Origin: Stylophora pistillata
Taxonomy: Eukaryota
DNA: 64,000 nt
NCBI RefSeq assembly: GCF_002571385.2
Contig: NW_019217889.1
Coordinates: forward strand, 260,744 to 324,743
Direction: 5' to 3'
The number at the start of each line of letters is the position of its first letter. Position 1 is the stretch's first letter. This document shows positions 318-62,600 of the stretch, piece after piece. The position numbers were made by a program, and so were the translations under genes. The notes below the pieces were generated by a model. The model was given only the letters and a program-made list of their open reading frames with translations. It was not told the origin of the DNA and made no database searches.

Positions 318-3300
318 TTTGCTGCCCCGCCAGATCGATTGATTTTATGTTTGATACCATTACACACGATCTGATTCTCCTCGCCCGTAGCCTGACATTT
401 ACCAATTCTAAACAGAAGTCGAGCGTCAAACGCTCTTTTGAGCAACTCGCAAAGTTTTCGTCCTTCATGATTACTTGGAAGGTATGCCGTGAAAAACCTC
501 TCGTGGTAAGGATGTCCTGGAGTAGGATGTTCCCATCCTGTAAAGTTAGAAACAAATGAAAATTATCAAAGAATATCAGACAAAATTGCATAGTATAAAT
601 GCCAATAAGTATTGTACATTGAAACACCTTACGAAACTTCTCCCTACCCTTCTCTACAACGGAAGTTCCAACAACCTAAACATCTGTTTTGAGAAAAAAT
701 GTCGGAAAAAACACGAGTGCACGCGAGAGCCCCGAAAGGTATCATCGATAGTTCTCAGGTCACGGTTCCTTGAACTCAGGATTTCAGAGAAACCTGAGAA
801 AACGTCACTGTATCAGAGGTAGTACTGCGGGTTTGATGAACTTATTTATTCATTTGACTTATAAAAATGTATTTATTAACGGATACCCGGATTACCTTTC
901 GATACTGTCACGCACACTTAGTTATTTTTCTGACAACCTTCTCGAAACAGGTGTATACAATCCGTTCATCCAACGTATAGGTCGTTCTGATTGATAGATC
1001 TCGTAATAAGACATGAATGATCGTCACTTAAATCGCAGAAACGTAATGATTCCACTCTAAACTTGAGTGGAAGAGATTTGATTCAAACCCACCTTGGGTT
1101 CCCGAGGGAAAGTTATAGGTAACGGCAATACTGTAATAGTCTGGATATCCAGGAAGAGGCTGTTTCTCTGTCCTCCAAGCCATGCTTCCTATTGGTTGGC
1201 TTCTTTCACAGATACACCATTGATTACTACAGATAGAACCATCAGTCGTGTTATCGATACAAGACTGGCAAAAGGTATGTCCACAATTCCGGGGTTCGAC
1301 CAGTTCTTGGTATGAGTTGCGACATATTGAACAGCGGAGTGTTGTTTGGCTTCCTTGCGACTGATCTGAAATTTTAAGGAAATTTTTAGCCCAGAAACAT
1401 AACTGTATCGACCACAAGCAAAAAAATTTTTATTCTGAAGAAATTGTGAAGAATTAAAGGGAAGACCTCAAAACTAAAGCATGAGAACAGCTGATATTTC
1501 ACATCATTGAGACATAAAGTAGGTCTAAGAGTATTGTTGACTATCGTATTATAATGGACATTGCAATGATCAACGAACATACAATCTCTATTATTTGTAC
1601 TATGGCAGCCACAATTCAACATATGATACTGATTCAAGTGACGATAAAAAAATCCTCATTTTGTAACTCTACCTTCGTCCTTCTCCACTGTGGATGCCTC
1701 ACTTGCGGATACCATTAGCTCCTTCTCTTCAGGCCCTTGACTTGTACCCGTGGCTAATAATGGCACATCATTTGGTGCTTCAGCTCTGTTTGATGCGGAT
1801 ACATTCGGAGTATTTGGTGCAGTTTCGAGCGCCATTTGCTTTTCCCTTTCTTTCTTCTCTGTCTTTGGGGCACTCGAATTTGAATGCACAGGATCACTTG
1901 CTGAGGACTCACGTTTACTGCCTTCCTTGGACTTGTCTGGCGGCTTGTTTTCGTCTTCTTTTGTTTTCTCTTTATTCGCATCAGGCTGATTCACATTGTT
2001 AACATCAGAAGCATCTGTGAATTGCTCGTTGTTTTCCGCCTCGAGTTGCTTTGCAAGATTAAGGTTATCCTTCGTCGCAGAGAGACCAGGGGGATGCTTG
2101 ATTTCACTTGTTGCTTTAAAGCTCATCGCCCTCCCAAATGAGGTACCATTTGTGTCACCTCCTTTCCGAAAAAAGCTAGGTGCAAGGATTCCTCTAGCAG
2201 GTACTGAATTTCCAGAACTCTTTGTTGTTTTGTCGGATCGTTCGCCAGTATCCTGACCTTCATCCTTGTGCTTAGTTTCATTCTTACTGCCTCCAACATT
2301 TTGGGCTTCAAGGCTGTCTGCCAAACTCATCTCGTCTGCCTTTAAGTTGCTTTCCTTAGAATTTTGCTGGTGCTGCTCTTCCACCCGTTGATGGGAGTCA
2401 TTTTCGTCCTGTTTTCTCATTGGTTCAGCAGGGCTATCCTGTGTACTCTTACACTTTTCAGTAAGTAACTCATCATCAATCCTTGGATCACCACCTCCTC
2501 GGTTAGTAGAAAATGGGCTATTTCCTTCTTCTTTAGATGGACGTCTCTGAATTTCCATTTGATTTTGCAACTTTTGTTCCGAGTAGTAACGGTTAACAAA
2601 TTCTCTTCGGAAGACCTCAGTGGTTTCTGCATCGATGATAACGACACGTATGTCACGGAGAGTACTACATTCTGCATCTATACTTGTGCTGAACTCTTCA
2701 ATCGCTCGAAAAATTGCGCCAGCACAGGCTTCTTTTGGCATACCGCAATTACCTGAGCTAATGGCTGGAAAAGCTATAGAAGAGAGTCGAAGTTGCACAG
2801 CAAGTCGGAGGCATGTTATGCATGTCAGTCGAAGAACAGTTATAGCAGCGCTTTTGTCGGGATAAGCTGACCAGTCTGGCCCAATTGTGTGGATTACATA
2901 ATGACAAGACAGATGCCCACTTAGGGTGTAAACAGCTTCACCAGGTTGCAGAGGGAATTTACGATGAGACATGATACACCGAGATTCATCTACTATTTGA
3001 CTCCCTCCTTTTATCACAATTGCACCGCCCACACCTTGAGAATGTTGAAGCCATGGGTTAGCTGGGTTGACAATGGCATGGACTTTTTCATCAGTTATGT
3101 CTCCCTGGTATAAGGATACCATTACGTTATTTGTCAACATCTGCTGTAGGATCTTAGGCAATGGCGGTTCATGATGGTGAGGCGAATGACTGATATTCCT
3201 TTGACCATTCCTAAGGTTGCCGCCGCTGAGTTTTGACAGTCCAAGTATATTTTTTAGAGCCTTTACTGAGCTCTTAAGATGAATATCCTCGCTATAGATG

Positions 3301-6300
3301 ATTAACTGACCTTCTGCTTTCTCAATCACAACGGGATGTTTGCTTTCCACGAATGCAATCGCCTCCTTGATTTTCCCGTCATCGTGGATGTCTCTTACAT
3401 CAATCACCTGTCGCTTCATGGTATGGTAGATGGTTTGGTACAAATCAATGAAAGCATCGCATCCTTCTTGATAGTGTGTTTCTTCGGCTAGAGATGTAGG
3501 TTTGATATCTACTCCAGGTTCATTTTCAGGCCAAATTATCTTTAGGTGGTACTCCCTTTCTATTTGTTCAAGCTTTTCCTTGTGTACTCTTATGAAAAAT
3601 TTCATGAATTTTGGTTCAACTTCAAAGGTGCGCTCTTCTACAATTTCCTGAGGGTCTTTTTTAACTTGCTTGAGATTTTTTGCAGAATTTTGTAGAGTTT
3701 TTATGGCATCTTTTCCTTGCACCATTCTTTCTTCCTTAAACAGCAAATGTGGACGCTGAAGAAAATATTTTTGCAAATACCTATGAGCAATTTCTAGTTG
3801 ATTGATCGTCCCAGAGAGAACAAATCCATCAAGACCCTTCACTTGCCATGATACACCAACTTCATCCTTCACCATTTTGAGCAGATTTTCTGACTTCTGA
3901 GGTGATATGGTATCGAAGCTCACAAAGGCAGTAACATGCGAGAAAACCTGTGCAGGTCAGAAATAAAAGGGGTAAGTTTCTAAAGAAACTGTGGCGCTGC
4001 GTCGGTATGTGGTATAACAAACGCTTTGTCAGAGCGACTGACGAATACCTAACTCTCGAAAAGTAAGCTTTAAAAAATCTTTGCGGTGGCCAATTTACAC
4101 TATCATGTCAGAAATAGGTTTGTCCAAATGATATAGAAAAATAACAAATGCAATAATAAAAGGGTAAACTGCGTCTAGTAGGCATTGTTCATTGTTACCA
4201 GGTAGAGCACCTAGCTCCCCTCGCTCAAGGTAGGTTTTGTAGTCACGACGCCTCACCTTCGGTTACAATTCACGCCTTTTTGTATATTGTTTTCTGTTTT
4301 CAGTTGTTCCGTGTATATTTGTTGTTTTATCAGGTTCGCCAGTCATTTTTGTCACGTCACTTTTCATATTTTTGTGTTCATTTTTTATGCATTGTTTCTA
4401 TTGTTTGGCATAGCTTCTTCTACCGTAGTTTTCTTGTCGCCGTTGTCATTATGTTTTAGTCGTCGTAGTCGCCACATAATCTTTTTAGTTTCGTTATTTT
4501 GTCCGTCATTTTGCCTGTTTTATTTATATTTCGTTTTGCTTTCCTGTTCTGTATATTTAACTTGTTTATGCACATTGGCCTTTAGCGAATCGCTAGTAAA
4601 GGTGCGAATTGCTCGGATTTGTGGATTTCGACTACAGGCTTGTCCTAAGGAAAAATTAGAGGCTGACAACAGTCTGAAGAATCATTTTGCTTTTGTTCTC
4701 TAGTTTGGAAACGTTTCAAGCTAAACAATAGGAGGGAAGAGGGCAAAGGCTATAGTGGCAAAAACTAAGTCCTAAGTAATGGACATTAATTAACTAGCTC
4801 AAGTAAAAATATTTTCGATTACTATCTTACTTGATCTTTAATCTTAATGCACGCTAAAAAGATTCATCATGCGACAATATACAATGAATAACTATACGTT
4901 TCCCCCCAAAAAACTAGGTAAATCACTCACTATGGTGTATATATATAGTGGAACCCCATTAACTCAAACTCCCAAGGGAAACAAAAAATGGTTCAACTCA
5001 ATGGTTCTAATGTATAACCAAACTATTTACCAACTAAAAGCATGTTTCCATTATTTTAATCTTTAAATTTTAGATGTAGCAAGTGCTTGGATTGACTTGG
5101 GGACTCTGTCTCTCTAAGATTACAGGGTAGAATGTTCCAGAGGGTTGCACCACTGTGACAAAAACTATTTTTGGACATACTGTAGATAGTTTGCAGGAAG
5201 GAACAATTAGTTTGTTTACAGACCCTTAGGGAAAGCACAATCACACTTAAATATTTCCATCTGAGTTGCTGAAACAAATTTTTTTGATATCAGTATCTAA
5301 ACTAGAAGACGTTAAAGTCGTGGAGCACGGTTCTGGAGATTCTGTACAGTTTTAGCAAGGCACTGATAGAGTTTTGCTACATTTACCCCAGACTAGATTT
5401 AGCCCAGACTGGAAATGAGATCGAGCAAGGACATTGTATTTGCGGAAAACTGTAAATTAAGGGACAAAAGACTTTTAGATCTTTAAATCAATTATATTTA
5501 GTGGTATACCTCTTGATTGCGGTATGGTCTAAGATCCACCTTTTTACCTCCAAACATGTGAGGGTGCTTCAATACCCCATCAGCAACTAATAAAGAAGAC
5601 AAAAATGAAGATCACATTTTAATGTATTTAATTCAATTTTTAGAACAAGAGACAGTAAAATATATATCCCAAGATACACCTTCTGTCTCCTGCTAGTTTT
5701 AACATGACTCAATATGCTAATAATAGTCTTATTTCCTCATAATGGATACATTGTCACAGTCATAAAGTTAATATATCAAGAGAAACCTATGAAATAATGT
5801 ATTTGAAATATTTGTATAAGTTTTGATCAATTGCCAGGGAAACCACAGAGGGGTGATATCTTTGATAGATGTTTCTTTTTTCTTCGGTGCAAGTTAGATA
5901 AAGCTTTTTCATGACAAATGTTCTCTTATTGTAAAATGTAAATTGTCCCGGCTTGTCTTCTGCTTTGTTGTGAAGCTGTACTAGGTCTGAACTGAAAGGA
6001 TCTTAATCCGAAATATTTACGGTATGGGCTAGGAGAGCCAAGCAAGATTGTTTACTGAATAATTTTTGTTTATTGCCAACATCAATCGAAGAGTGTCAAG
6101 CTCAGACAAAGTTTGTTTTGATATTTTGTACAACAACGCACTTACTCCTGCACGAGGACACTGATTTTGCACAGTTTTACATATGACAAGCAGACTTCAC
6201 GTTTTGCTTGCTTGCTGCCTCGCTTAGTTTGTCTAGCAAGCAATAGCATTGTAGATAATTCACGTGTATCAACTGAGTTGATAATGTAAATTGGCCGCCG

Positions 6301-8239
6301 TAACCGGAGTATGAAGGTAGATCCTGGACAAAATGTTCGTTTCGTCGTTTCGTTATGGCGTTTCGTCGTTTCGTTATGTCGAGTCGTTGTTTTTCGAGTT
6401 CGACTCGTCGAACTTCTAGTTCGTTTCGTCGTATTGTCAGTTCGATTCGTCGGCTGGCCTCTTCGACTCGTCGTTTTACGAGTCCGACTCATCATCCACC
6501 ACATCTGTTCGTCGTTTTGTCGTTTCGTCATTTCGTCATGGCGTTTCGTCGTTTCGTTATGTCGTTTCGTCGTTTCGAANNNNNNNNNNNCGAAACGACG
6601 AAACGACATAACGAAACGACGAAACGACATAACGAAACGACGAAACGCCATGACGAAATGACGAAACGACAAAACGACGAACCGATGTGGTCGATGACGA
6701 GTCGGACTCGTAAAACGACGAGTCGAAGAGGCCAGCCGACGAATCGAACTGACAATACGACGAAACGAACTGAAAGTTCGACGAGTCGAACTCGGAAAAC
6801 AACGACTCGACACAAAGAAACGACGAAACGCCATAACGAAACGACGAATCGAACATTTTGTCCAGGATCTACCTTCATACCGGAGCCTTTCTAAGCTGAC
6901 GTTTCGAGCGTTAGCCTTCGTCATTCGCTCTGATGAAGGGCTAACGCTCGAAACGTCAGCTCAGATTAACTCTTTAGAAGACTAATTTACTCAACTCAGT
7001 TAATGAAACCAAATTATCTTCTTCTACTACCCCACCGACGCAGCACCACAGTTTCTTAAGAGACTTATCCCCTAAAATTATAACATCGCAGCGCTCCTAT
7101 CAACTCTTGAGCGACGCATTTGTTATATTAGCAAGCTATTTCCGTGACACTGACAGGTTTAATTAAATACCGAACTTCTCAGGAACCGAACCCCGAAACA
7201 CCTGGAATAAAATGCATGAATAGGGTCGGCGCCTGAGACAATCAACAACTGTTGCTTCAATAAAGAACGGCGTATCCGTTTTCTCGCCTGGCGTGCCCTG
7301 AAAGTATAGCTCGACTGTGGAGCGGATCGAAATGGCATTTATTCGGGCGCCGAAATTTGCAAGTGCCGAACCACAATGTGTATATCATAATAACATTTTT
7401 GCTAAAGGTTTCCTCAAAACGTAGTGGGGACGGTTAGAAACGGTCGGCGTCTGAGTCAATAGACGTTTTTTGCACTAGTTCGCTCACTCCGTGTTAGAAT
7501 TTAAAGTTCGGCTGCCGAGTAATTCGAAGTCTGAGTTTTAACAAACCAAAATTCTTCGTGAGTTCATCGATTGCGATCTCTTTTTCGCTCCAGATGTCTC
7601 CCATGACCTCAAAATGTCATTAATTTTATTTTTAAACAGTGTACACTAGCTCCCAACTCATTCGAAAGCCTCCGCATTTACTTTTCAAAACGTACGTTTC
7701 GCTGTGGGTTAACACAGCCTCAGGTTCCAGATGCCAACGGATCTGTTTCTTTATTCTTTCGAATTGAAGCGGATGCCACAACAACAATACGTAAAGCTGT
7801 ACAAGAGTTTAGATAAAAAAAGTCTCTGAAAAGATTTTTCCTTGGTCAATCTCACGTAAAATCTCCTCAAGTCAAGTTTGAAAGGTTCGTAGTAAACAAG
7901 GAGCGAACAAGATGAAGCCGGAAGTTGTTTGACTGATCTCTTGTAGATTTCACTTTTCCGCTGACTGAGACACATAAGAGACCAAATATATGAGCACATT
8001 TTAAATTTTACCTTACCTTCAGGGCTTTCAAAGACAATGACTGCTTTTCCATCCTTTGTCATCCAAATATCATCGACTTCTCCCCCGCCGTTTTTACTTT
8101 TCTGGAAATGTATGTGAATTTCATCTTTTGTAATTTGTCTCGGTATGTTCGATATCACCACAGCTCTAGCAAACTTTTCGACACTCAAACGTCCTAGCTG
8201 TGATTCTATTGACTCTGGATGGTCATTCATCTCTGCCAT
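318..8239 (-). CDS. Gene A: DTX3L-like E3 ligase with internal macrodomain (RRM-KH-like-Macro-charged linker-RING-DTC); last exon lies left of the window
   Basis: Exons: 8239-8017 (Kozak accaccATGG; RRM-like HFQKSKNGGGEV), 5586-5510 (VADGVLKHPHMFGGKKVDLRPYRNQE), 3947-1673 (KH-like region; macro QGDITDEKVHAIVNPAN...AFPAISSG), 1365-1093 (RING CSIC..CGHTFCQSC; start of DTC LPGYPDY..YNFPSGTQG), 537-318 ([23 protein letters not shown]). All junctions are GT-AG with matching phases 1,0,1,1,2. Confidence 0.88.
6310..6879. mobile_element. Palindromic non-autonomous TIR element (TATGAAGG...CCTTCATA) built of GTTTCGTC-type subrepeats, with a 6-bp flanking duplication CCGGAG
   Basis: The two arms are near-perfect reverse complements around the N gap at 6580-6590. 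CCGGAG occurs at 6304-6309 and 6880-6885. Confidence 0.75.
6893..6961. repeat. Short hairpin repeat containing a hammerhead-like core (Penelope-type terminal repeat family)
   Basis: agctgacgtttcgagcgttagcc...ggctaacgctcgaaacgtcagct is an inverted repeat. CTGATGA is at 6930-6936 and GAAACGTC at 6950-6957. A degenerate relative lies near 3990-4070. Confidence 0.55.
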
Positions 8240-8701
8240 GGTGGTAAAGGCAATAAATGCGAGCACTATACTGCTCCCGTAGCTAAATTTCGCAACACAG
8301 AGTTCGGTGTTGTTCGTATCTCGTGGAAATAGAAAGAGTGGGACTAGCACCGAAATCACCAAGCCGAGGCATGAAGCCCACGGGGCAGGAAGCACTGCCG
8401 AAGTGTTTTGGGGCAAACCAAAGTTCTTGTTGAAACAGGCTGATTGTGGACTTTTTCGCTCTTGTCTGATCTGTGAAGTATTATTATTTTATTGCACCTC
8501 TCATCTAAAACCAGGTTGCTTAGGGTCGAAACGATTTCAAGGTACTTTATTTAGATGATTGAAAGGATTTTTCCGGGAATTCAGTCTGGAGATTCCCGGA
8601 ATATCTACTTCCGCTTACTAATTAGGTTTCAGTTTGAGAGCGAGCCCTCAAATATTTTGATGTGTTGTGCTGCGTGGAAGACAATTTGGTAGGCTTTGAG
8701 G
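8240..8701. promoter_or_regulatory. Bidirectional promoter between genes A and B with two GAS (STAT) sites and IRF/ISRE-like motifs
   Basis: ATGs at 8239(-) and 8702(+). TTCCGGGAA at 8571-8579 and TTCCCGGAA at 8593-8601. GAAATAGAAA at 8326-8335. GGTTTCAGTTT at 8625-8635. ETS-like ACTTCCG near 8607-8613. Confidence 0.7.
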
Positions 8702-22263
<13,562 letters not shown>

Positions 22264-22474
22264 ATTTATAATTAAGGTGTTTTATTTCGTTCGTTATATT
22301 TCCATTTTTCCTTCTTTTGCATGAATTTTTTTCTAGTCCAACCGTTTTGTTTTAGAAATATTTGAAGTCCTGGGTACGATACTTGGAATCACATGATGGC
22401 GAGTCAACTTCCTCTTTTTAAAATCGTTTAGGTGCTGTCGCTCTCTTTATTATGCTTTTCATGATCAGGAAGTT

Positions 22475-23681
22475 ATAACGCAAGCTAAGGTTTTTTCGAT
22501 AACGTGAAAAAGGAAATTGAATGCCCAGTATGCTAGGAGCAATTTAGCGTAAACAAGCAACCAAAGATTCTGGAATGTCTTCATACCTTTTGCAAATCTT
22601 GCCGTACAGTAACGGAATGTCTCAACACTGATATCGATAATCTTCCGTCGAACCTGTTTTACAAACAAATAGTGGAAATTGTGGAGGCATACGCAGGTCA
22701 AGAAGAGTCATCATGTTGCGGGAAATGCGAAGAACAGAAATCGCTGAGGTTTTATTTCTCCACTGAATTGCAACTGTTTACTGTGCGAAGAATGCGCTGC
22801 AGTGCACAAGAAGTGGAAGGATTTCAGAGGCCATCAGCTCAAGGAAATGGGAAAACGTCACTCTCGTAATGTAGAGGACTACTCTCGAAGAGCAAACGTC
22901 TGCAAAGAGCACGAGGACAAAATTAGATTTTACTGCGAAGCATGTCGAATTTGCATTTGTCGTGACTGCGCCATACTGGATCACGACGACCACAAGAAAA
23001 TTTCGATAGAGAAAGGACTAGAAAGTAAGGCAACTGAAATCAAGAATAAGATATGAGAGGTTCAGGAAAACGGATCTGTCTTGAGAAACAAAAAGGAATC
23101 TCTGGAGAAACGTAGAATGTACGAATGGTTGCACAACAATAGATAACATTCAGCAGTTTGGATTTTGGCGAGGAAATTCTCTCTCGTAGGAATCTACCAG
23201 AAATAATAAATGTCGAAGAAATGTTGGAGAACAGGCTATAGGAACTATCCGTGCCTTTTGAGCCTTCACTGAATTTCCCTGAAGTTGTGTACAATTCAAA
23301 TGATTTCAGTTGCTTGAGAGACGGACCTGGAAAGCTGATAAGGACATTTACAGAACCTACGGCATCTGTTGCAGAAGGTCAAAGTTTGACTGAGGCTATC
23401 CAAGGAGAAGAGAGCACATTTACTGTGATTACTGAAAAGATATCAAGGGCCAAATTGTTTATGGCGAAATCGATCATGTCAATGATGCGATGATTTCCGT
23501 CAATGCAAGAGGGACTTTGATAGCCAGCGTCACAGACTCAAAGAATGGCCGATATCAAGTAGAGTACACAAGTGAGACGACAGGTGACTTTAAAATATCT
23601 GTTACAGTACAAGGTGAAGCCATCAAGGACAGTCCGTTTACTTTAAGGGTGAGAAAGACAGAACCAGAGACATTTTATCAG
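22475..23681 (+). pseudogene. TRIM (RING/B-box/coiled-coil/filamin) pseudogene, paralog of the exon at 28411
   Basis: The start codon is ATA instead of ATG. Deletions in the RING and coiled coil, frameshifts and stops split it into ORFs 22672, 22802, 23251 and 23490. It keeps the same TTTTATCAG|GTATC donor. Confidence 0.9.
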
Positions 23682-27524: not shown

Positions 27525-28410
27525 CTGCAACATCTCTGCTTTGATTTTCTGGAGGAATCGAGACTGGTGGTAATTTTTTGGCGGAATTATTCGCTTCGGG
27601 CGACGGACGCTTCTAAAATAGGTTTCCGGCCTTGTCTTTCTTTTAGCAGTTGAACACCAACATAGCGCTAACTCGCCGAAAACGCTTCAAAATGGCCTGA
27701 GACGCTCGGAATCAACAAAGAAAACAACAAGGCAATAAGGTAAGCCCATTTTATTTCAAAACAAGACATTTTTTTCTCTCTTTTAAGGCAAACCGATAAC
27801 ATCCCATACAAACCTTTATAAAAATAAAACGTTACGCAACACGGTAAGAATCACGTCCGCTTTTCTAGGAGTGAGCTTGGGCTGCCTGTGCGTATCCAAG
27901 TGAATTAGTGTAAAACCAAAAGCAGCCCAAGCGTAAAAATTATAACAATAAAGTTAAAAAGAATAATAAAAGCGAGGAATAACACGAGTGAAGTCTCCTT
28001 ACCTTTTTTCCGTAGCCGCTTTGTTGCTAGCAGTCGTTTTAACGCTGTTTTGGCGACTTTCTTTGTAACGCGTGTAGTGCTACCGGCCAACTGAATAATT
28101 TTTCTATTTTCAGTTGACTGGTAACACCGCACGCGTTACAAACAAAGTGGCCAAAACAGCGTTAAAAGGACCGTAAAGGACAAAGTAGCCACGGGAAAAA
28201 AGTAAGGATACTTCATACCATATATTTCTCGCTTTTATTGTCCTTTGAAATGTTTTCTTAATTTTTTTTATATAATTTTTCCTTTTATAAAGTTGACTTT
28301 AGACCCCAAGATCACACACAGTCAGTACCCTTGGGCCGCCTGCGATAAAACGAAACTGTAAATCTAGATCTATTACAAAGCGAATTTCTCCCGCTGCCTC
28401 ATTAGAAGCT

Positions 28411-29817
28411 ATGGCGCAAAGTAAAAGCTTCTTCGATGATGTGAAAAAGGAAGTAGAATGCCCAGTGTGTCAGGAACAGTTTGGCGAAAACAAGGAACCG
28501 AAAATACTCAAATGTTTTCATACGTTCTGTAAATCATGTCTGGAAGGTTGGCTTCGACAACAACGCAAGGAAGCTTTGAGTTGCCCGACTTGCCGAACAA
28601 AAACTGAGTGCCCTAACAATGATATCGACAGTCTTCCGTCGAACCTGTTTTACAAACAAATGGTGGAAATTGTGGAGGCATACACTGGTCAAGAAGAATC
28701 ATCATGTTGCGGGAAATGCGACGAACAAAAATCGCTGAAGTTTTACTGCTCTAATTGCAACTGTTTACTGTGCGAAGAATGCGCTGCATTACACAAGAAA
28801 TGGAAAGACTTCAGAGGCCATCAACTTAAGGAAATCGGAAAACTTCAGTCTCGTGATGTAGATGACTACTCTCGGAAAGCAAACGTTTGCAAGGAACACG
28901 ACGACGAATTTAGATTTTTCTGTTTAGCATGTCGAATTTGCATTTGTCGTGATTGCGCCATATTGGATCACGACGACCACAAGAAAATTTCACTCGAGAA
29001 AGGACTAGAAAATAAGACAACTGAAATTAAGAATAGGATACAAGAGGTTCAGTCGAACGGATCTCACTTGAGAAACAAAAAGGAATCGTTGGAGAAACGT
29101 AGATCCAAAGTAATCGACAGCTTTGAGCGAGCAACGAACAGTGTACGCGTAATTGCAGAACAATGGATCACATTCATTCGTAAGCATGAAACAGACATCA
29201 CAGAAAAGTTAATGAAGCAGAAAGAGGCATTTAAAGCTGAATTTTCAAACCAGATGTCGAGCTTGGATGATAGACTGGTGGACATCGACAGCAGCCTGCA
29301 ATTTGGCGAGGAAATTCTTTCTCGTAAGAATCTACCAGAAATATTAAACGTCGAAGAAATGTTGGAGAACAGACTGCAGGAACTATCCGTGCCTTTTGAA
29401 CCTACACTGGATTTCCCTGAAGTTATGTACAGTTCAAATGATTTCAGTTGCTTGAAAGACGGACCTGGAAAGCTGATAAGGACAGTTTCGGAACCTATGG
29501 TATCTGTTGTGGAAGGTCAAGGTTTGACTGAGGCCATCCAAGGAGAAGAGAGCACATTTACTGTGATTACAAAAGATATCGAGGGCCAAATAGTTTATAG
29601 CGAAATCGATCAGGTCAATGTTGAAATAACTTCTATCAATAAAAAAGGGACTTTGATAGCCAGCGTGACAGACTCAAAGAATGGCCGATATCAGGTAAAG
29701 TACAGAAGTGAGACAACAGGTGACTTCAAAATATCCGTTACTGTCCGTGGTGAAGCCATCAAGGACAGTCCGTTCACTTTAAGAGTGAGAAAGAGAGAAC
29801 CACAGGCATTTTATCAG
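28411..29817 (+). CDS. Intact TRIM exon (TRIM2/3/45/71-like RBCC plus filamin), 469 codons
   Basis: [21 protein letters not shown]; B-box1 CGKC..CSNC..CEEC..H..H; B-box2 CKEH..CLAC..CRDC..H..H; filamin [17 protein letters not shown]...DSPF; donor CAG|GTATCG. Confidence 0.93.
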
Positions 29818-32800
29818 GTATCGTTTTTCATGTTCCTTAAACTTCCAAGCAGTTTCAATTGAAAGAACGTAATCTACATGAATATGAGCTTGATATATTT
29901 GTTGAAAAGTCACCACCGCTGATGTAATTCTCGCTGGATCCCTGAACTTCCCCATGATTTCTTCACTGAATTCACTTTACGCTTTAAAGTTGTATTTCAT
30001 TAGAAACTGGCTACACTAAGAAAATCGATTCACTTTCGCGGATAAACCTTCAAAACAACTATGATTGACTCTTTTAGTGGAACAGGTATTGGACAGATGA
30101 GGGTGACGATAATTCTGATAATGATGATCCGTTGGAACACAAACTGGGTAAGTGCAGCATTTATGCATCTCTTTGTATCTGCAAATGCGTGTTAGATAAA
30201 CACAAGCTTGAGACTTCAAAGACTGAGCAGCAGGACGAACTTAATATTACTTTGAGCCAACGTTCACATACAGGCTTCCCTAAAATTGTTTTAAGTAGAT
30301 CACAGTGTGTTAACGCACTCAGGGGAGCTAGCTATTGCTACTAACGTAAGTAGAGTACATAAAATCTTAATTTCCACATTTACTTCACGGGATGTTTAAA
30401 GGTGAAAGTACAGGTTGACAGCTTAGTAAGTATCACCTTTATAAGAACTTGTTCGCAACAAAGTTAAGGAGGAGACTGACATCGAGTTCCACGATACAAG
30501 TGAAGGGTTTTTACTTTCAGGGAGTTTCCAACAAGTAAAACAGAGTCGAGATCTGTTCAGCCACTACTTAAGAAATGTGGTTCAGAATTTAGATTTGAGA
30601 CCGTAAATTTCCGATGAGTCAGAGAAGAAAAGGAGATCAGCGAAGCATCCAGAGAAATTTTCAAGTCCTACATCAAATGAGACTGGTCACTTGGAAAATG
30701 AGAAGGAAGCAGGCGCTGTAAAAGGCTCAGGTAACGAAAATAACTTTGAAGAGGAAGAATCTTCAAATTTGGAACCTCAACAGTACGAAACGACGAAGAG
30801 GTTTTTCCCTTTGTTCGTCAGAGCCCATGGCGAAGACTTACAGAGAATCGAAAAGGATTTTAGAGTAAAAGTGCATAGAGAAGCCGTTGATAACAAAGTC
30901 ATCGTGGCACCAACCGGACGCTGCACTGTTAAAGAATTTGATGAGGGATGCGATGCTTTCATTACTCTTTATCAAGATGTTCATAAGCGCATGAAGCTCG
31001 AACAATTTATTCCGAGAGACGAGGAAACACCAACACGTGTGAGGCAACGTATCAGGGACATAGGCAAGACACACCCCGTCTTGGTTGAAAAATGCGAGGA
31101 CCGCAAACACTGGAAAGTCTACGGCGAAGATTGTTTGGTGGATAAATTTCTCAGCGATCTCCTCACCGAGCGTCTGATTATAATCATACTGCACCGGAGC
31201 CTGAGGGTTGGAACGGGGATTGGACAGGTGAGGGTGACGACGATTCTGATGGTGGTGATTCGTTGGAACACAAACTTGGTAAGTGCAGAATTGATGCGTC
31301 TTGTTAAAAGACAAAATTGGCATTTAGCAAGAATTTTTATGAAGTGTGTTTTTAAACTTATTTAAGTGTTAAGAACATAAAAGGAAATACTATAAGCCAT
31401 TCAGTACAGAAATTATAACTAAGCAAAGTTGATCCTTTCCATTCGTTTTGGCGGTCATAACTTTCAGGTAGAATTTCTGTCAACTTTTTCTCATTGTGGT
31501 CGTTAATTTAGACTTGAAAGCAGATGTTCAGTTTCTACGGTAATTACAACTTGTGATAGAATATTTTGGTTATCTCGCAGTAAGCTATATTTCAATTATT
31601 TTGATCTGTTTGATAAAGAAGAGAGTAAATCGCTCTGGTAAAAGTTAGACTCGTAGAGGAATTCCAGGAAATTTCTACTTGTTATACTTTCTACTATTTT
31701 CAGGCTCGTTTTTAGATTAAATTCTATGTCAAATTCACGATCAAGGAAATATTTCTTAAATTTTAATTTGACACCTCTTTCTTTAAGGTGACCGTAAGGG
31801 GGCGGTACTTGTGTACACTCCTTCTTCCTCGAATCCTCTGTTTATTCTGTTGTTATGTAACAAAGTTCAAGGACTGTTTTCGTTTTAGTTATCTTTTTAA
31901 GTGCAATTCTAATCCACGCAACGGTTTCTTTATATTTTTTTTTAATATTGCCAATCTTGTTTTTGTTTTACCGGAACTAATTAAAACTGGAAATGTAAGA
32001 AATTTAAGGTAGAAAACGATTTTGTAACTGCGTAAACAACTCGAAAGTACATACTTAGTATACAGGGACTGTTTAACGTAACTTAGCATGATTCGCTAGT
32101 TAAGATAAAAACAATGATGATGCATGAAGATTGACAGCTTAATAAGTATCACCTTTATAAGCTGGTGAACAACATTTTCACTCAGAGCTGAGCTAGTCCC
32201 GATAGTAGTAAGTTGTATTAAGAGATCAAAGCAAGGAATAAAGAAGTATCAACTGTACAGGAGTGTTAGAAAAGCTTCTAGCAATCTCTTATATCTGCGA
32301 AATGCGTGTTTGATAGATGTACATTCGTTGTTAATCAACGTTGTCCGTATAATTTCCTGACAAGAAGAAAATACCTAGGAATTATTTAGCTGTACTCTCT
32401 TTAGTTGACCATGAATATGATTCTCATTTATCCTTAAATGTCTTGAAAAACTAAAGTCACTTTTTACACAGGCCTATAAGACTTAAAGGCTGAAGAACAA
32501 GACGAACGTGGAATTATTTTGAGCTAACATCCACATGCACGTTTCCCTGAAAACTGCTTACTGTAGATGGTCTATAAATGCATTGTGCTGATTTTTACCT
32601 CCAACTTAGTTAAGTATAATACAAAATCCTTATTTCCACAATTCAGGGCTCAAAGTTAGCGACCAGCTGGTCGCACATGCAACTAGATTTTTAATTGTGC
32701 GCCTAAAAATTCATGTGTGAACGCACTTGCGCGCCTATAAATCCCAGAAATTAGTGCGACTGAGCTTATCACCACTCAACTCTGTTTTCTCACCTGATCA

Positions 32801-36773: not shown

Positions 36774-37714
36774 TCTACTGGATCGCTGACTCCCGTCAGG
36801 AGTTGAAATTCGTAACAATCATGAGACACAACTTTTCGTAGTTTCTTTATTAAGCCGGAGGGTTCTCTCTTCGTCTTCTCAAATTTGAACTATTCAATAG
36901 GTACATTGTAGGGATAGCTAAGGTGTACACAATGGCAAAAAAGATCCTTTATTCATACGTAGGTAGTCTGTTAAGACTAAGGCGCACGAGCACCTCCAGA
37001 ACTGACTGGCAGAGACCGTATTGCTAGAATAAACTTGGCGTGCGATAAAAACCGGGTTTAGTTTAATGTAGTTTGAGTGTAGTGTGTCGTAAATTTTGAT
37101 GGCTTTCTCTTTTTAGATTTCTGGTAAAGTTTCTTAGCTTGTGGAGGGAATAGCTTGTTTGTACTCCCAGTTTACTGTTTAGGGATTATGTAAGCAGCAA
37201 CCGAAAAAAATCGCTAAAACAATAATAAAGAAGGCAACCTTTTTAAAGAGCCCCTGAGACGAAAATGGACCATTTTATTTTGGCCTAACTTGTTTACACA
37301 ATGTTGAATTGGGTCAAGTTAAGACCCTTTTTGCCATTAAAAACTCAAAACAAACCTTCGATGACCAATTTTTACCGCTTCAAAGTCGTCCAAAAATCGT
37401 CCGCCATTGCTGNNNNNNNNNNNNNNNNNNNNNNNNNNNNNNNNNNNNNNNNNNNNNNNNNNNNNNNNNNNNNNNNNNNNNNNNNNNNNNNNNNNNNNNN
37501 NNNNNNNNNNNNNNNNNNNNNNNNNNNNNNNNNNNNNNNNNNNNNNNNNNNNNNNNNNNNNNNNNNNNNNNNNNNNNNNNNNNNNNNNNNNNNNNNNNNN
37601 NNNNNNNNNNNNNNNNNNNNNNNNNNNNNNNNNNNNNNNNNNNNNNNNNNNNNNNNNNNNNNNNNNNNNNNNNNNNNNNNNNNNNNNNNNNNNNNNNNNN
37701 NNNNNNNNNNNNNN

Positions 37715-44416
<6,702 letters not shown>

Positions 44417-59676: not shown

Positions 59677-62600
59677 TTTCAAAATCAAGACACTCATCAA
59701 AACAACAGGAGACAGCGAGACGACGCTTCAAGAGAACCTCCCTCTCCTCAAGAGCCTACCTCTGTGACATCAGCCCAGTATGGATCACCCATTCCCGAGC
59801 AATGCACAATCGAAGTAACCGGTTTGCCAGAAGATGCATCTGAGGATTTGGTGACAATCTACTTCGAAAACACCAGACGTTCTAAGGGGGGTCCTGTGTC
59901 TTCCGTAGTCATGACACCCGAACTTCGGAAGTGCCTGGTCACCTTTGAATCTCCTGATGGTAAGAATGAATGATGATAAATCATTACATTATTATATGTT
60001 TTGGTTTATTCTTAAAACGTTTTGGTAACGGTTTAAACCTTTTTTAGATGCAGAGCGGACGATAAGTTATTCATCTCATGTTTTGAGCGGAGCAAGTATA
60101 CAAGTCTCACTGTTTGAAGAGGAGGAGGAAAGTGCCGTCGATTCCGGTGAAAACGGAGAAGACGAAGAGGAGGAAGACGGCATCACCATTATTGTCAGCG
60201 GCATCATGCCCTCCACCTCAGAGGATGCAGTGATCTTCTACTTTGAGAATTCTAGACGATCAGGAGGAGGCGATGTCTCCGAGATCCATTTCAACGAAAA
60301 AGGGGAAGCGATCATAACTTTTTCTGAGGTTAAAGGTAAACGACACTTTCTTTGAAAAGTCTCCAATTTGACAGATTTATTGATAAGTTCAGGTCTTTCT
60401 TGAGAAAAGGAAGTCAAGTTCAAATGATGCATATGATAAAATGTCAAGTAAACGTTCTTAAGCGTAATCGCTGTCTCTGAATATTTTGATTACATTAATA
60501 TTTTTAACTTTGATATTTATTACAGACCTGCAGCGCCTTCTCGAGGAGTCACACAAAATTTACGGCCAAATGATAACAGTGGTAAGACAGCCTCCTTCGA
60601 AAAAAGTGCCGCTTGATCCATTAAGAGTTCATGTTCAAGGAATCAGCGAAACGACCACCATAGATTGTTTGACCTGTTATCTGGAAAAGTTTGTTGATGT
60701 TGAGGTTGAAAATGTGTATCTTGGTGCAAAGAATAATGCCCTGGCAGTTTTTGAAAGTGAACCAGGTAATTTTATGACTACAAAGGTTTAGTTTATAGTA
60801 CTTGAATTAGATGACATTTTCATGGCTATCTTGTTTTTGAAGTCGATTCATATGCAAAAAAAAGTGGTTAGTAGTATGAGTATAAAAGAAAAATAAAAGA
60901 AGCAACATGAATGAACAATCAGTTACAACTCGAAATTTAGAGTGTAATAATGACTTTAGAGTGTTGTTACGGCTTAGTCAATCATTTTCAAACATCCTTA
61001 ACCCTTTTTTCGAAACGTTGTCATACTTGTATAATTATACTTGTACTTAGGACGATACTTTTCTTCGCCACTTGCACCAAGTCCTTGTTCTGGTCAATAC
61101 ATCTATCTAAAGTTGCACGTTACATAAGGAAACACCGATCTTCACATTTTGTGTGTTGTGTTAACCAAAATCTTTACACCGCTAATTACACGAGTGGCAA
61201 TATCACTGTTCTGCACGGATTATCTATTTCAGACTTTGAATCACTCTTGCATAAAGTTAACAAAGATAAAAAAGGCTTGGAGGGAAAGAAACCGCGCCTG
61301 GAAAGAGTAGCAGTCTGTTCATGTATTCTGGTCACGGGACTGAAGAAAGAGTCAACCGATCACACCATTGAGCTTTATTTTGACAATGAAAAACGAAGTG
61401 GTGGGAAGGATGTCTACAGAGTGGAAAGGATTAGGAAAGACCAGGCCTTAGTCTATTTCGAGGATCATACAAGTAAGAAATATGTATTGGTGTATTAAAA
61501 AGTCTCTCTGTTTTCTTTTTTCTGCGTGTTGTTTTCCTATTGCTATCACATTTTAACATTGGGGTTTTGCTACGAACTTTTCAGTTTATCTAAAACATTG
61601 TGTTTAAGGAAAACTCAAAGCCACTGTTTAGTAGATTCCTTCGGGATACTCTCATGTGATAGCTGATTTATCACTTGGAGAGGGAGGGGAGAGGTGGGAT
61701 TGGAGAATTTCAGTGATTTCAAAATGAGATGTATCTGAACCCCCCCCCACCAACCCCATTGAGCTCTGCAGTATTCTCATAATCCTCCAAAGGTAAGCTA
61801 TGATTTTCATGATCCCACTTCCATGGTATTGACGTGCAGATACCAATCTTAAACTGACCTAACCCCCGAGACTCCCCCTCTCAGCTTTTTTTTAAATGAG
61901 GCAAGAGGATTTTATCTGGGTAACTGTTCACTCCTGTAGCTGTTCATTTCTCTTGGAGGTATATTTGTTGTGAATCTGGTGAAAATCAGCCAGTAGATAT
62001 GGGAGATATTAAATAACAAGTTGGTTATGGTTTAAAGGTTTGACATAATGTAATATGAATTGGTAATACCTTGATTTCGAGTGCAATTTGGTGTTGATGA
62101 GCATGAGTATATTTTTCAAAGAAAACAAAATAAGGAATGCTAAGAACTAACCATAGCAAGGGTGTGAGGTTGGAAAGAAAGCGTACTTTTGGTAAACTGC
62201 TCTCTACAAGACTGATTACCCTACTGAATAGGATGTTGTATAGTGCAGGCTTTGTTTTTTGTATGGCACCACTTTGTCTGTTTGTTTGTCTGTTGATTGA
62301 CAATACTCAAATAATACTGAAGAGTGTCTTTCACTCAGGAGTTCATGATGTCATTGCAAGAAGCCAGAGACAGGCCAACGCCCTTGACGGCGCTATCTTG
62401 GAAGTGACGCCGTACTACCCTTTCCTGGGAAACGGAGATGACGTTCAATCTAGAAGTTGATACCATGAATACATTAATCCCGGTTTATCCCAAGGTAAAC
62501 TGCTACTTGAGGAGCGCAGAGTGGCTGAATTCCTACATGGCTCGATAGTCACGATTTCACCCTCGGGAAGGGACCCTTCATCAGAAGAACGAACTGAGAA

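Follow-up and report, generated by a model that had tools for sequence, protein, structure and literature searches.

A putative shared divergent promoter with a conserved STAT-type tandem GAS module between two DTX3L-like genes of the coral Stylophora pistillata

In the stony coral Stylophora pistillata, two genes resembling DTX3L lie head to head, and the 462 bp between their start codons probably form a shared divergent promoter in which a tandem pair of gamma-activated sites (GAS) of the STAT type, with ETS, NF-kB and IRF sites as neighbours, would provide an antiviral type of induction without interferon. The locus belongs to a 64-kb stretch of genomic DNA, referred to here as the window (G000:C106:260744-324743, in an assembly of 398 Mb; the N runs of the window were kept as they are). 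The intergenic region occupies positions 8240-8701 of the window, between a minus-strand ATG at 8239-8237 and a plus-strand ATG at 8702-8704. Its candidate regulatory sites are concentrated in a composite module of 66 bp (8570-8635), about 85 bp 5' of the plus-gene ATG, which is the best-conserved stretch of the intergenic region in a four-lineage alignment and which, judging from its sequence, is very probably a functional, conserved cis-regulatory part of the divergent promoter.

Cnidarians, from which no interferon is known, run a vertebrate-like antiviral gene programme. The promoter evidence on the factors behind it has so far consisted of the statistical enrichment of vertebrate motif matrices, and knock-downs of STAT and of single IRFs in the sea anemone Nematostella vectensis have been inconclusive. 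The S. pistillata locus offers a short footprinted module with defined sites, order and spacing, together with two genes as a built-in dual read-out, so that dependence on STAT as opposed to NF-kB or to ETS and IRF factors becomes directly testable.

The composite module and its conservation

The sites of the module follow one another in the order GAS1, 13 nucleotides (nt), GAS2 (overlapped by an NF-kB-like GGRRATTCCC), 6 nt, the CTTCCGCTT element, 8-10 nt and TTTCAGTTT(C). In the window they read as follows.

8571-8579, no strand assigned: GAS1, TTCCGGGAA (TTCN3GAA), with half-sites invariant in 10 orthologous sequences and a 3-nt centre of CGG, TGG, CGA, CCG or CCA.
8580-8592, no strand assigned: spacer of 13 nt between the GAS sites, its 5' half variable and its 3' half purine-rich.
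8588-8597, minus strand: NF-kB-like GGAGATTCCC (reverse strand GGGAATCTCC, which fits GGGRNWYYCC), overlapping GAS2; elsewhere GGGAATTCCC or GGGGATTCCC.
8593-8601, no strand assigned: GAS2, TTCCCGGAA, reading TTCCC[G/A]GAA in every orthologue; most paralogous promoters have TTCC[C/T][G/A]GAA.
8605-8616, minus strand: CTACTTCCGCTT, the longest stretch without variation in the intergenic region; its reverse strand contains an ETS-type core, GCGGAAGT.
8617-8626, no strand assigned: ACTAATTAGG, 10 nt with a TAATTA core, lying in this lineage between the CTTCCGCTT element and the IRF-like repeat; others have 8-9 unrelated nt there.
8627-8635, minus strand: IRF-type half element TTTCAGTTT (reverse strand AAACTGAAA), conserved as TTTCAGTTT(C) or TTTCATTTC.

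An initial annotation, made from the letters of the window, had placed an inverted pair of GAS motifs 13 nt apart and two IRF-type motifs between start codons lying 462 bp from each other, and direct reading of the sequence bears out all of these positions. Both GAS sites have the optimal form TTCC[C/G]GGAA, and their spacing of 22 bp from centre to centre places them on the same face of the helix. The two IRF assignments fared differently. An element resembling an interferon-stimulated response element (ISRE), GGTTTCAGTTT, is present at 8625-8635 and its IRF-type half TTTCAGTTT is conserved, but the element is not whole: an ISRE or IRF element (IRF-E) consists of tandem GAAA repeats of the form GAAANNGAAA(C/G)(T/C), and no such arrangement is conserved in the intergenic region, where one half, AAACTGAAA, is kept and a 10-nt insert splits it from a GCGGAAG unit. 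The intact IRF-E is present in the paralogous promoters B, C and D, introduced below, and in the coral contig L042. The other motif, GAAATAGAAA at 8326-8335, was rejected as an IRF site because it is not conserved in the four-lineage alignment. Absent from the initial annotation were the NF-kB-like GGAGATTCCC, the element CTACTTCCGCTT, which is the most conserved of all, and a second conserved block at 8336-8370.

Matches to TTCC[C/G]GGAA number two in the window, both in the intergenic region, whereas dinucleotide shuffles gave a mean of 0.40 and reached two or more in 4 cases out of 100. The arrangement TTCN3GAA-N13-TTCN3GAA occurs once in the window, against none in 100 shuffles. Single TTCN3GAA sites are found 34 times in the window, and throughout the genome the GAS-13-GAS pattern has 168 matches in 398 Mb as against 124 for a reversed control. 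The tandem pattern is rare and not unique, and the case does not rest on rarity alone. The intergenic DNA itself is single copy according to a genome search.

Conservation in related species had been named beforehand as a check on the proposed promoter, and both the GAS pair and the TTTCAGTTT IRF-like element have been kept across coral lineages. The head-to-head pair of first exons recurs, together with the 66-bp module, in at least six other coral-derived contig lineages, with an intergenic length of about 380-470 bp. The large exon is about 70% identical in protein in two Tara Pacific contigs (L002, L003) and 40-48% identical in three ENA coral assemblies (L025, L026, L042), and in six JGI/ENA metagenome contigs (L096, L141, L105, L107, L132, L126) at least one first exon flanks the module, or both where the contig is long enough. 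These metagenome contigs came from a pattern scan most of whose matches were chance occurrences in bacterial contigs, and loci labelled as human-gut metagenome were left out. No head-to-head partner was found within 10 kb in contigs L043 and L044.

In the four-lineage alignment (A2), 53% of the columns of the module are invariant as against 25% in the rest of the region (Fisher p = 7.6e-6). Across the lineages all 12 columns of the GAS half-sites are invariant, whereas four of the six columns of their centres vary. GAS1 takes the forms TTCCGGGAA, TTCTGGGAA, TTCCGAGAA, TTCCCGGAA and TTCCCAGAA, in which all three central bases vary, and the variation of GAS2 across orthologues is confined to its sixth base. 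The gap between the two sites is 13 nt in six sequences. Invariant half-sites around varying centres are the TTCN3GAA signature of STAT recognition. The footprint is best explained by STAT-type sites standing beside ETS, NF-kB and IRF sites.

The S. pistillata genome holds at least three further head-to-head pairs of genes with an RRM first exon (C106 at about 211 kb, C745 at about 84 kb and C153 at about 83 kb). The intergenic regions of these paralogous pairs read GAS, 2-9 nt, CTTCCGCTTTCNNTTTC, GAS. Read on the opposite strand, the middle part is a perfect IRF-E, GAAASYGAAASY, and then GCGGAAG. The CTACTTCCGCTT element directly abuts the IRF-E in the paralogues (GAAANNGAAAGCGGAAG); about 10 nt (ACTAATTAGG) interrupt the IRF-E in the window lineage. 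The distance between the starts of the two GAS sites is 32 bp (a gap of 23 nt) in pairs C and D, a form also found in L042, pair B keeps the order with degenerate GAS-like sites, and the distant paralogue L010 has GAS-13-GAS again. The spacings of 22 and 32 bp differ by one helical turn. The paralogous promoters represent motif turnover with the content retained, the same parts standing in another order. The intergenic region of pair D (L011 at about 1975-2050, G000:C153) also contains a tRNA-like stretch, GGCGCAGTGGT...GGTTCGATTCCCGGAC, in which ARAGORN called no tRNA and which is probably a short interspersed element derived from a tRNA; it has GATTCCCGGA in common with the module at its NF-kB/GAS2 part, perhaps by coincidence.

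Throughout the genome, GAS-N5-10-CTTCCGCTT has 13 matches against three for the control, and three of the 13 are DTX3L-type pairs, the remainder lying near open reading frames (ORFs) that are unrelated or match no domain, such as those of an ABC transporter, an ion channel and an aerolysin/ETX-MTX2-like protein. The pattern CTTTCNNTTTCNNNGAA has 336 matches against 231. A genome-wide regulon was considered and given up, as the excesses of the three patterns over their controls (13/3, 336/231, 168/124) are too weak to define one. The aerolysin-like case (L029, G000:C108:233177-236200) has GAS-6-CTTCCGCTT at C108:234677-234700, just 5' of an ORF of 425 aa with an aerolysin/ETX-MTX2 pore-forming domain (E 8.6e-11), and a paralogous site lies at C108:276977.

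Divergent transcription, candidate factors and published systems

Divergent transcription, as expected of the bidirectional promoter proposed in the initial annotation, is seen in stranded raw RNA reads (X24), which lie on opposite strands over the two first exons and include splice junctions. Head-to-head genes less than 1 kb apart and divergently transcribed define a bidirectional promoter, and here 462 bp separate the two ATGs and the reads lie on opposite strands. The donors at 8018 and 8912 are given by reads and RNA contigs, with continuations that map to 5586 and 15053, and the introns are without coverage, which makes genomic contamination unlikely. In two further RNA-type runs, the contigs of the minus gene reach 8309 and stop there, and other RNA contigs span 8363-8840 and 8451-8875, placing the RNA 5' ends at 8309 at least for the minus gene and at 8363 at most. 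Two arrangements would fit: the plus gene may start just 3' of the module and have a minor start farther upstream, or the 5' untranslated regions (UTRs) of both genes may nearly abut at about 8310-8362. In run X1, one RNA contig over exon 1 of the minus gene (8017-8309) has 11 differences from the reference and a slightly different exon-2 sequence, and is a divergent allele or comes from another S. pistillata lineage. The further features of the locus are the following.

8240-8701, no strand assigned: shared divergent promoter and 5'UTR region, intergenic, between both start codons.
8326-8335, plus strand: GAAATAGAAA, reading GAATTAGGAA, GAAATGGGGA or AAAAATAGGC elsewhere and so not kept as an IRF motif.
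8336-8370, no strand assigned: second conserved block, GAGxGxGACTxG...TCAC..A...GAGGC, also in paralogous pairs and lying between the RNA contig 5' ends 8309 and 8363; it may be the core promoter or the start region of the minus gene.
8018-8239, minus strand: coding exon 1 of LOC111327799, whose donor 8018 splices to 5586.
320-5587, minus strand: downstream exons of LOC111327799, at 5587-5504, 3950-1674 (KH-like and Macro), 1375-1091 (RING) and 595-320 (Deltex C-terminal domain, DTC).
8702-8912, plus strand: coding exon 1 of LOC111327745, whose donor 8912 splices to 15053.
15053-19312, plus strand: downstream exons of LOC111327745, with exon 2 from 15053, KH-like at 15735-16277, Macro at 16960-17604, RING at 18194-18394 and DTC at 19043-19312.

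Factors of the types suggested by the module are encoded in the genome, as the initial annotation had supposed for STAT and IRF. A STAT gene is represented by collinear exons for STAT_alpha, STAT_bind (twice), STAT_linker (38.9 bits) and SH2 (29.5 bits) at G000:C116, about 129.7-135.7 kb, and the genome also has one NF-kB gene with a Rel homology domain and five IRF domains. An exon-wise Pfam search for STAT_bind at default thresholds gave nothing significant; the gene was recovered through collinear weak exon matches and exon-by-exon Pfam scans, and its evidence stays per exon, not that of a joined model. The STAT matches occur twice with identical scores, on C116 at about 129.7-135.7 kb and on C122 at about 25.6-28.9 kb, and are probably a haplotig or one locus assembled in duplicate.

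Vertebrate interferon-stimulated genes (ISGs) have composite promoters of GAS and ISRE/IRF-E. The paralogous coral promoters, with GAS - GAAASYGAAASY - GAS, and the TRIM-like neighbours, with ISRE/GAS composites near their ATGs, are alike in this respect, whereas the IRF-E of the window locus is interrupted by 10 nt. By this analogy, the locus would resemble the promoter of an ISG without being a member of the class in the strict sense. A second comparison concerns the spacing of the sites, as mammalian STAT5 tetramers prefer a gap of 11-12 nt between tandem GAS sites, with minor peaks at 6-7 and 16-17 (PMC4990345). The coral module likewise has two tandem TTCN3GAA sites, whose conserved gap somewhat exceeds one helical turn and is a turn longer in the paralogues, but the gap is 13 (or 14) nt instead of 11-12.

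Mammalian DTX3L and PARP9 had been named in the initial annotation as a head-to-head pair under an interferon-inducible bidirectional promoter. The bidirectional promoter common to human PARP9 (BAL1) and DTX3L (BBAP) responds to IFN-gamma and contains STAT and IRF sites (Juszczynski et al., 2006, cited after bioRxiv 10.64898/2026.04.23.720386). Both systems consist of head-to-head macrodomain/Deltex-3-like genes with a short intergenic region containing STAT and IRF sites, and with 5'UTRs that are close or shared. In the coral, however, both partners are DTX3L-like, each with a macrodomain, and no PARP9 is involved, and the ETS-like site and the overlapping NF-kB-like site are prominent. The vertebrate DTX3L-PARP9 locus arose in its head-to-head form only after the lungfish split (bioRxiv 10.64898/2026.04.23.720386), and the coral layout has therefore not been inherited from the vertebrate one. 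Between the deep conservation and the convergence that the initial annotation had left side by side, an inherited layout is thus unlikely: the coral layout parallels the mammalian promoter by convergence, while the STAT/IRF/NF-kB/ETS motif logic may be old. The locus adds to the macrodomain/Deltex-3-like axis a bidirectional promoter that is independent of the mammalian one and parallel to it, and it bears on the repeated co-regulation of these genes.

The closest published data come from N. vectensis, in which Stat5b (TTCCCAGAA) has been found to be the most enriched promoter motif among the top 10% of genes induced by poly(I:C), followed by ELF5, Stat5a::Stat5b, STAT1 and ELK3 (Lewandowska et al., 2021, PMC8476169). 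When all genes induced by poly(I:C) are taken together, NFKB1 and IRF1 motifs are enriched too, and STAT, ELF1-like and IRF genes are themselves induced (PMC8476169). The neighbouring DTX3L-like genes NVE22268 and NVE22270 rise with log2FC values of 4.8 and 4.7 (about 26-fold), as do PARP14-like genes (PMC8476169). The vocabulary of STAT5/STAT1-type GAS, ETS, NF-kB and IRF motifs is the same in both cnidarians, and DTX3L-like and PARP14-like genes are among those induced in the anemone, but the anemone study reports statistical enrichment with vertebrate matrices and no module, whereas the coral locus presents one module of fixed order and spacing that can be traced over lineages and paralogues. 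Since this enrichment and the induction of DTX3L-like genes have already been published for the sea anemone, the locus is a further example of a known regulatory logic, and its value is that of a ready test object. In S. pistillata, a gene annotated as DTX3L has been named among the differentially expressed viral-defence genes, together with CGAS and JAK3.

Explanations of the conserved footprint

According to the reading that we consider probable, coral STAT would bind both GAS sites, possibly cooperatively, ETS, NF-kB and IRF factors would act together with STAT on the module, and both genes, each depending on the module, would be switched on in an antiviral or nucleic-acid-sensing response without interferon. 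Several observations weigh against it. The gap of 13 nt is near the 11-12-nt optimum of mammalian STAT5 tetramers without coinciding with it, and one lineage (the L105 group) has a gap of 14 nt. Conservation of the ETS-like 12-mer and of the NF-kB-like flank of GAS2 equals or exceeds that of the GAS sites, and other factors may thus carry the function. In Nematostella, knock-down of STAT or of a single IRF caused no measurable reduction of the induction by 2'3'-cGAMP, and knock-down of NF-kB affected a subset of genes. Neither the N-terminal (tetramerisation) domain of STAT (PF02865/STAT_int) at the STAT locus nor the FERM_F2 domain of JAK gave a match in exon-wise Pfam searches, which are weak for short exons. 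As for transcription, the RNA-derived contigs 8363-8840 and 8451-8875 cross the module and place it in the 5'UTR of some transcripts, and the raw-read evidence amounts to 11 reads in all, none of them seen 5' of about 8650.

A further-reaching version, which we put forward tentatively and rate as doubtful, is that the module has been a tetramer-type cooperative STAT enhancer on DTX3L-type genes since before the compared stony-coral lineages diverged, driving an interferon-independent, ISG-like co-induction, and that the cis-grammar of ISGs predates the interferons. If it were true, STAT cooperativity on the ADP-ribose/ubiquitin antiviral axis would be older than interferon, and vertebrate interferon would later have plugged into an existing circuit.

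The module could also be immune-responsive and yet be run by NF-kB, ETS and IRF factors, with TTCN3GAA as a by-product of GGAA/TTCC cores and no role for STAT. Almost every orthologue and paralogue has a GGRRATTCC(C) overlapping GAS2, in several cases a perfect GGGAATTCCC, the ETS-like 12-mer is the most conserved element of all, poly(I:C)-induced promoters of Nematostella show an enrichment of NFKB1 and ETS motifs (PMC8476169), and the cGAMP-induced genes of the anemone responded to the knock-down of NF-kB and not to that of STAT. The substitution pattern of the GAS sites nevertheless makes this unlikely in our estimation: the TTC...GAA of GAS1 is kept in 10 of 10 sequences even where it no longer resembles an NF-kB site (GAGAATTTTG in L025, CGGAAATTCA in L026), no change is seen in the right half-site GAA of GAS2 although the NF-kB core does not include it, L026 has lost the GGAA core of GAS2 (CCCAGAA) while keeping TTCN3GAA, and L141 has a weakened NF-kB site (GAGAATTCCC) with both GAS sites retained. 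The enrichment in Nematostella also ranks STAT motifs above NF-kB (PMC8476169). With its site overlapping GAS2 in nearly all copies, NF-kB is still a serious co-candidate. E2F, NFAT and a simple ETS dimer were rejected as occupants of the GAS sites on inspection, the cores they need (CGC, GGAAA and GGAA) having been lost in at least one lineage in which TTCN3GAA is kept.

TATA-less and bidirectional promoters typically contain ETS sites, and the region might be an ordinary constitutive promoter of this kind, built around a GABP-like ETS site, with GAS-like palindromes kept for basal function or nucleosome positioning and no inducible immune logic. Expression of both flanking genes is indeed seen in ordinary RNA libraries for which no challenge is known. 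We regard this explanation as improbable, as two GAS sites with NF-kB-like, IRF-E and ETS sites are the very set of motifs enriched in cnidarian poly(I:C)-induced promoters, homologous DTX3L-like genes are among the strongly induced ones in Nematostella, the paralogous promoters retain an intact IRF-E together with GAS, and neighbouring TRIM-like genes have ISRE- or GAS-like elements about 50 bp 5' of their ATGs. The chance that the motif matches are fortuitous in a region conserved merely through low divergence appears slight indeed: single TTCN3GAA sites are common and the genome-wide excess of GAS-13-GAS is small, as given above, but the conservation persists in lineages with 40-48% protein identity in the large exon, the module is twice as conserved as the remaining intergenic DNA, and the substitutions avoid the half-sites. 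Equally hard to credit is that the inverted repeat TTCCGGGAAT...ATTCCCGGAA acts as an RNA hairpin of the 5'UTR or as a DNA cruciform instead of as protein half-sites. It is a perfect inverted repeat of 10 bp with a loop of 11 nt and about -17 kcal/mol in S. pistillata and in a Pocillopora-like contig, and RNA contigs cover the module; however, any two GAS sites are complementary at six of nine positions by construction, the gap of 14 nt in the L105 group is asymmetric, and in the paralogues the two GAS sites stand 32 bp apart around the IRF-E. The hairpin was rejected, as no compensatory changes occur and the pairing is broken in two lineages (one pair in L025 and three in L026), a single wobble being found, in L002.

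Flanking genes and neighbouring loci

The head-to-head genes, which the initial annotation had taken to be of the Deltex family, do have the expected architecture. The minus gene, LOC111327799 (P0001, 1052 aa), reads RRM/NID-KH-Macro-RING-DTC and the plus gene, LOC111327745 (P0056, 842 aa), RRM/NID-KH-like-Macro-RING-DTC, so that both have a PARP14-type RRM/NID first exon, a macrodomain, a RING and a Deltex C-terminal domain. The DTC domains score 138.7 and 80 bits, RING and RRM_PARP14_3/NID are found, and the match to KH_DTX3L is weak; the RING-DTC part gives E values of 1e-29 to 1e-36 against vertebrate DTX3L. With RING followed by DTC, and with an RRM and a KH-like domain at the N-terminal side, both are of the DTX3L type and are predicted to be macrodomain-bearing, DTX3L-like E3 ligase paralogues. 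A macrodomain has been described as the ancestral state of DTX3L, lost once PARP9 appeared (preprint bioRxiv 10.64898/2026.04.23.720386), and the extra macrodomain of the coral genes agrees with this ancestral architecture.

The exons encoding KH-Macro-RING-DTC of the plus gene lie in a 7-kb duplicate (15558-22602 and 37715-44754, 99.7% identity), the second copy of which starts directly after an N run at 37413-37714, and the duplicate is either a recent segmental duplication or a mis-join of the assembly. A third, diverged Macro-RING-DTC set is situated at about 30.4-36.4 kb of the window. At the right end of the window, PARP14-type RRM exons on the plus strand (59809-59958, 60188-60328 and 60950-61498) point to a PARP14-like gene. 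Two TRIM-like single-exon genes with RING-B-box-filamin domains (ORFs 54176-55459 and 28411-29862) are preceded by interferon-style elements that lie about 45-65 bp 5' of their ATGs: at 54116-54133, CTTTCGGTTTTCCGAGAA is an ISRE-like repeat overlapping a GAS, and at 28346-28357, TAAAACGAAACT is ISRE-like. In contig L043, a TRIM-like gene adjoining a DTX3L-like gene has CTTCCGCTTTTCCAAGAA about 55-70 bp 5' of its ATG. The cluster of DTX3L-like, TRIM-like and PARP14-like genes may be of interest to coral biology as a probable antiviral island. The segment 6142-6924, within intron 1 of the minus gene, has long ORFs on both strands, with mirrored low-complexity translations around an N run at 6580-6590, and looks like an inverted or palindromic repeat or the remnant of a transposon.

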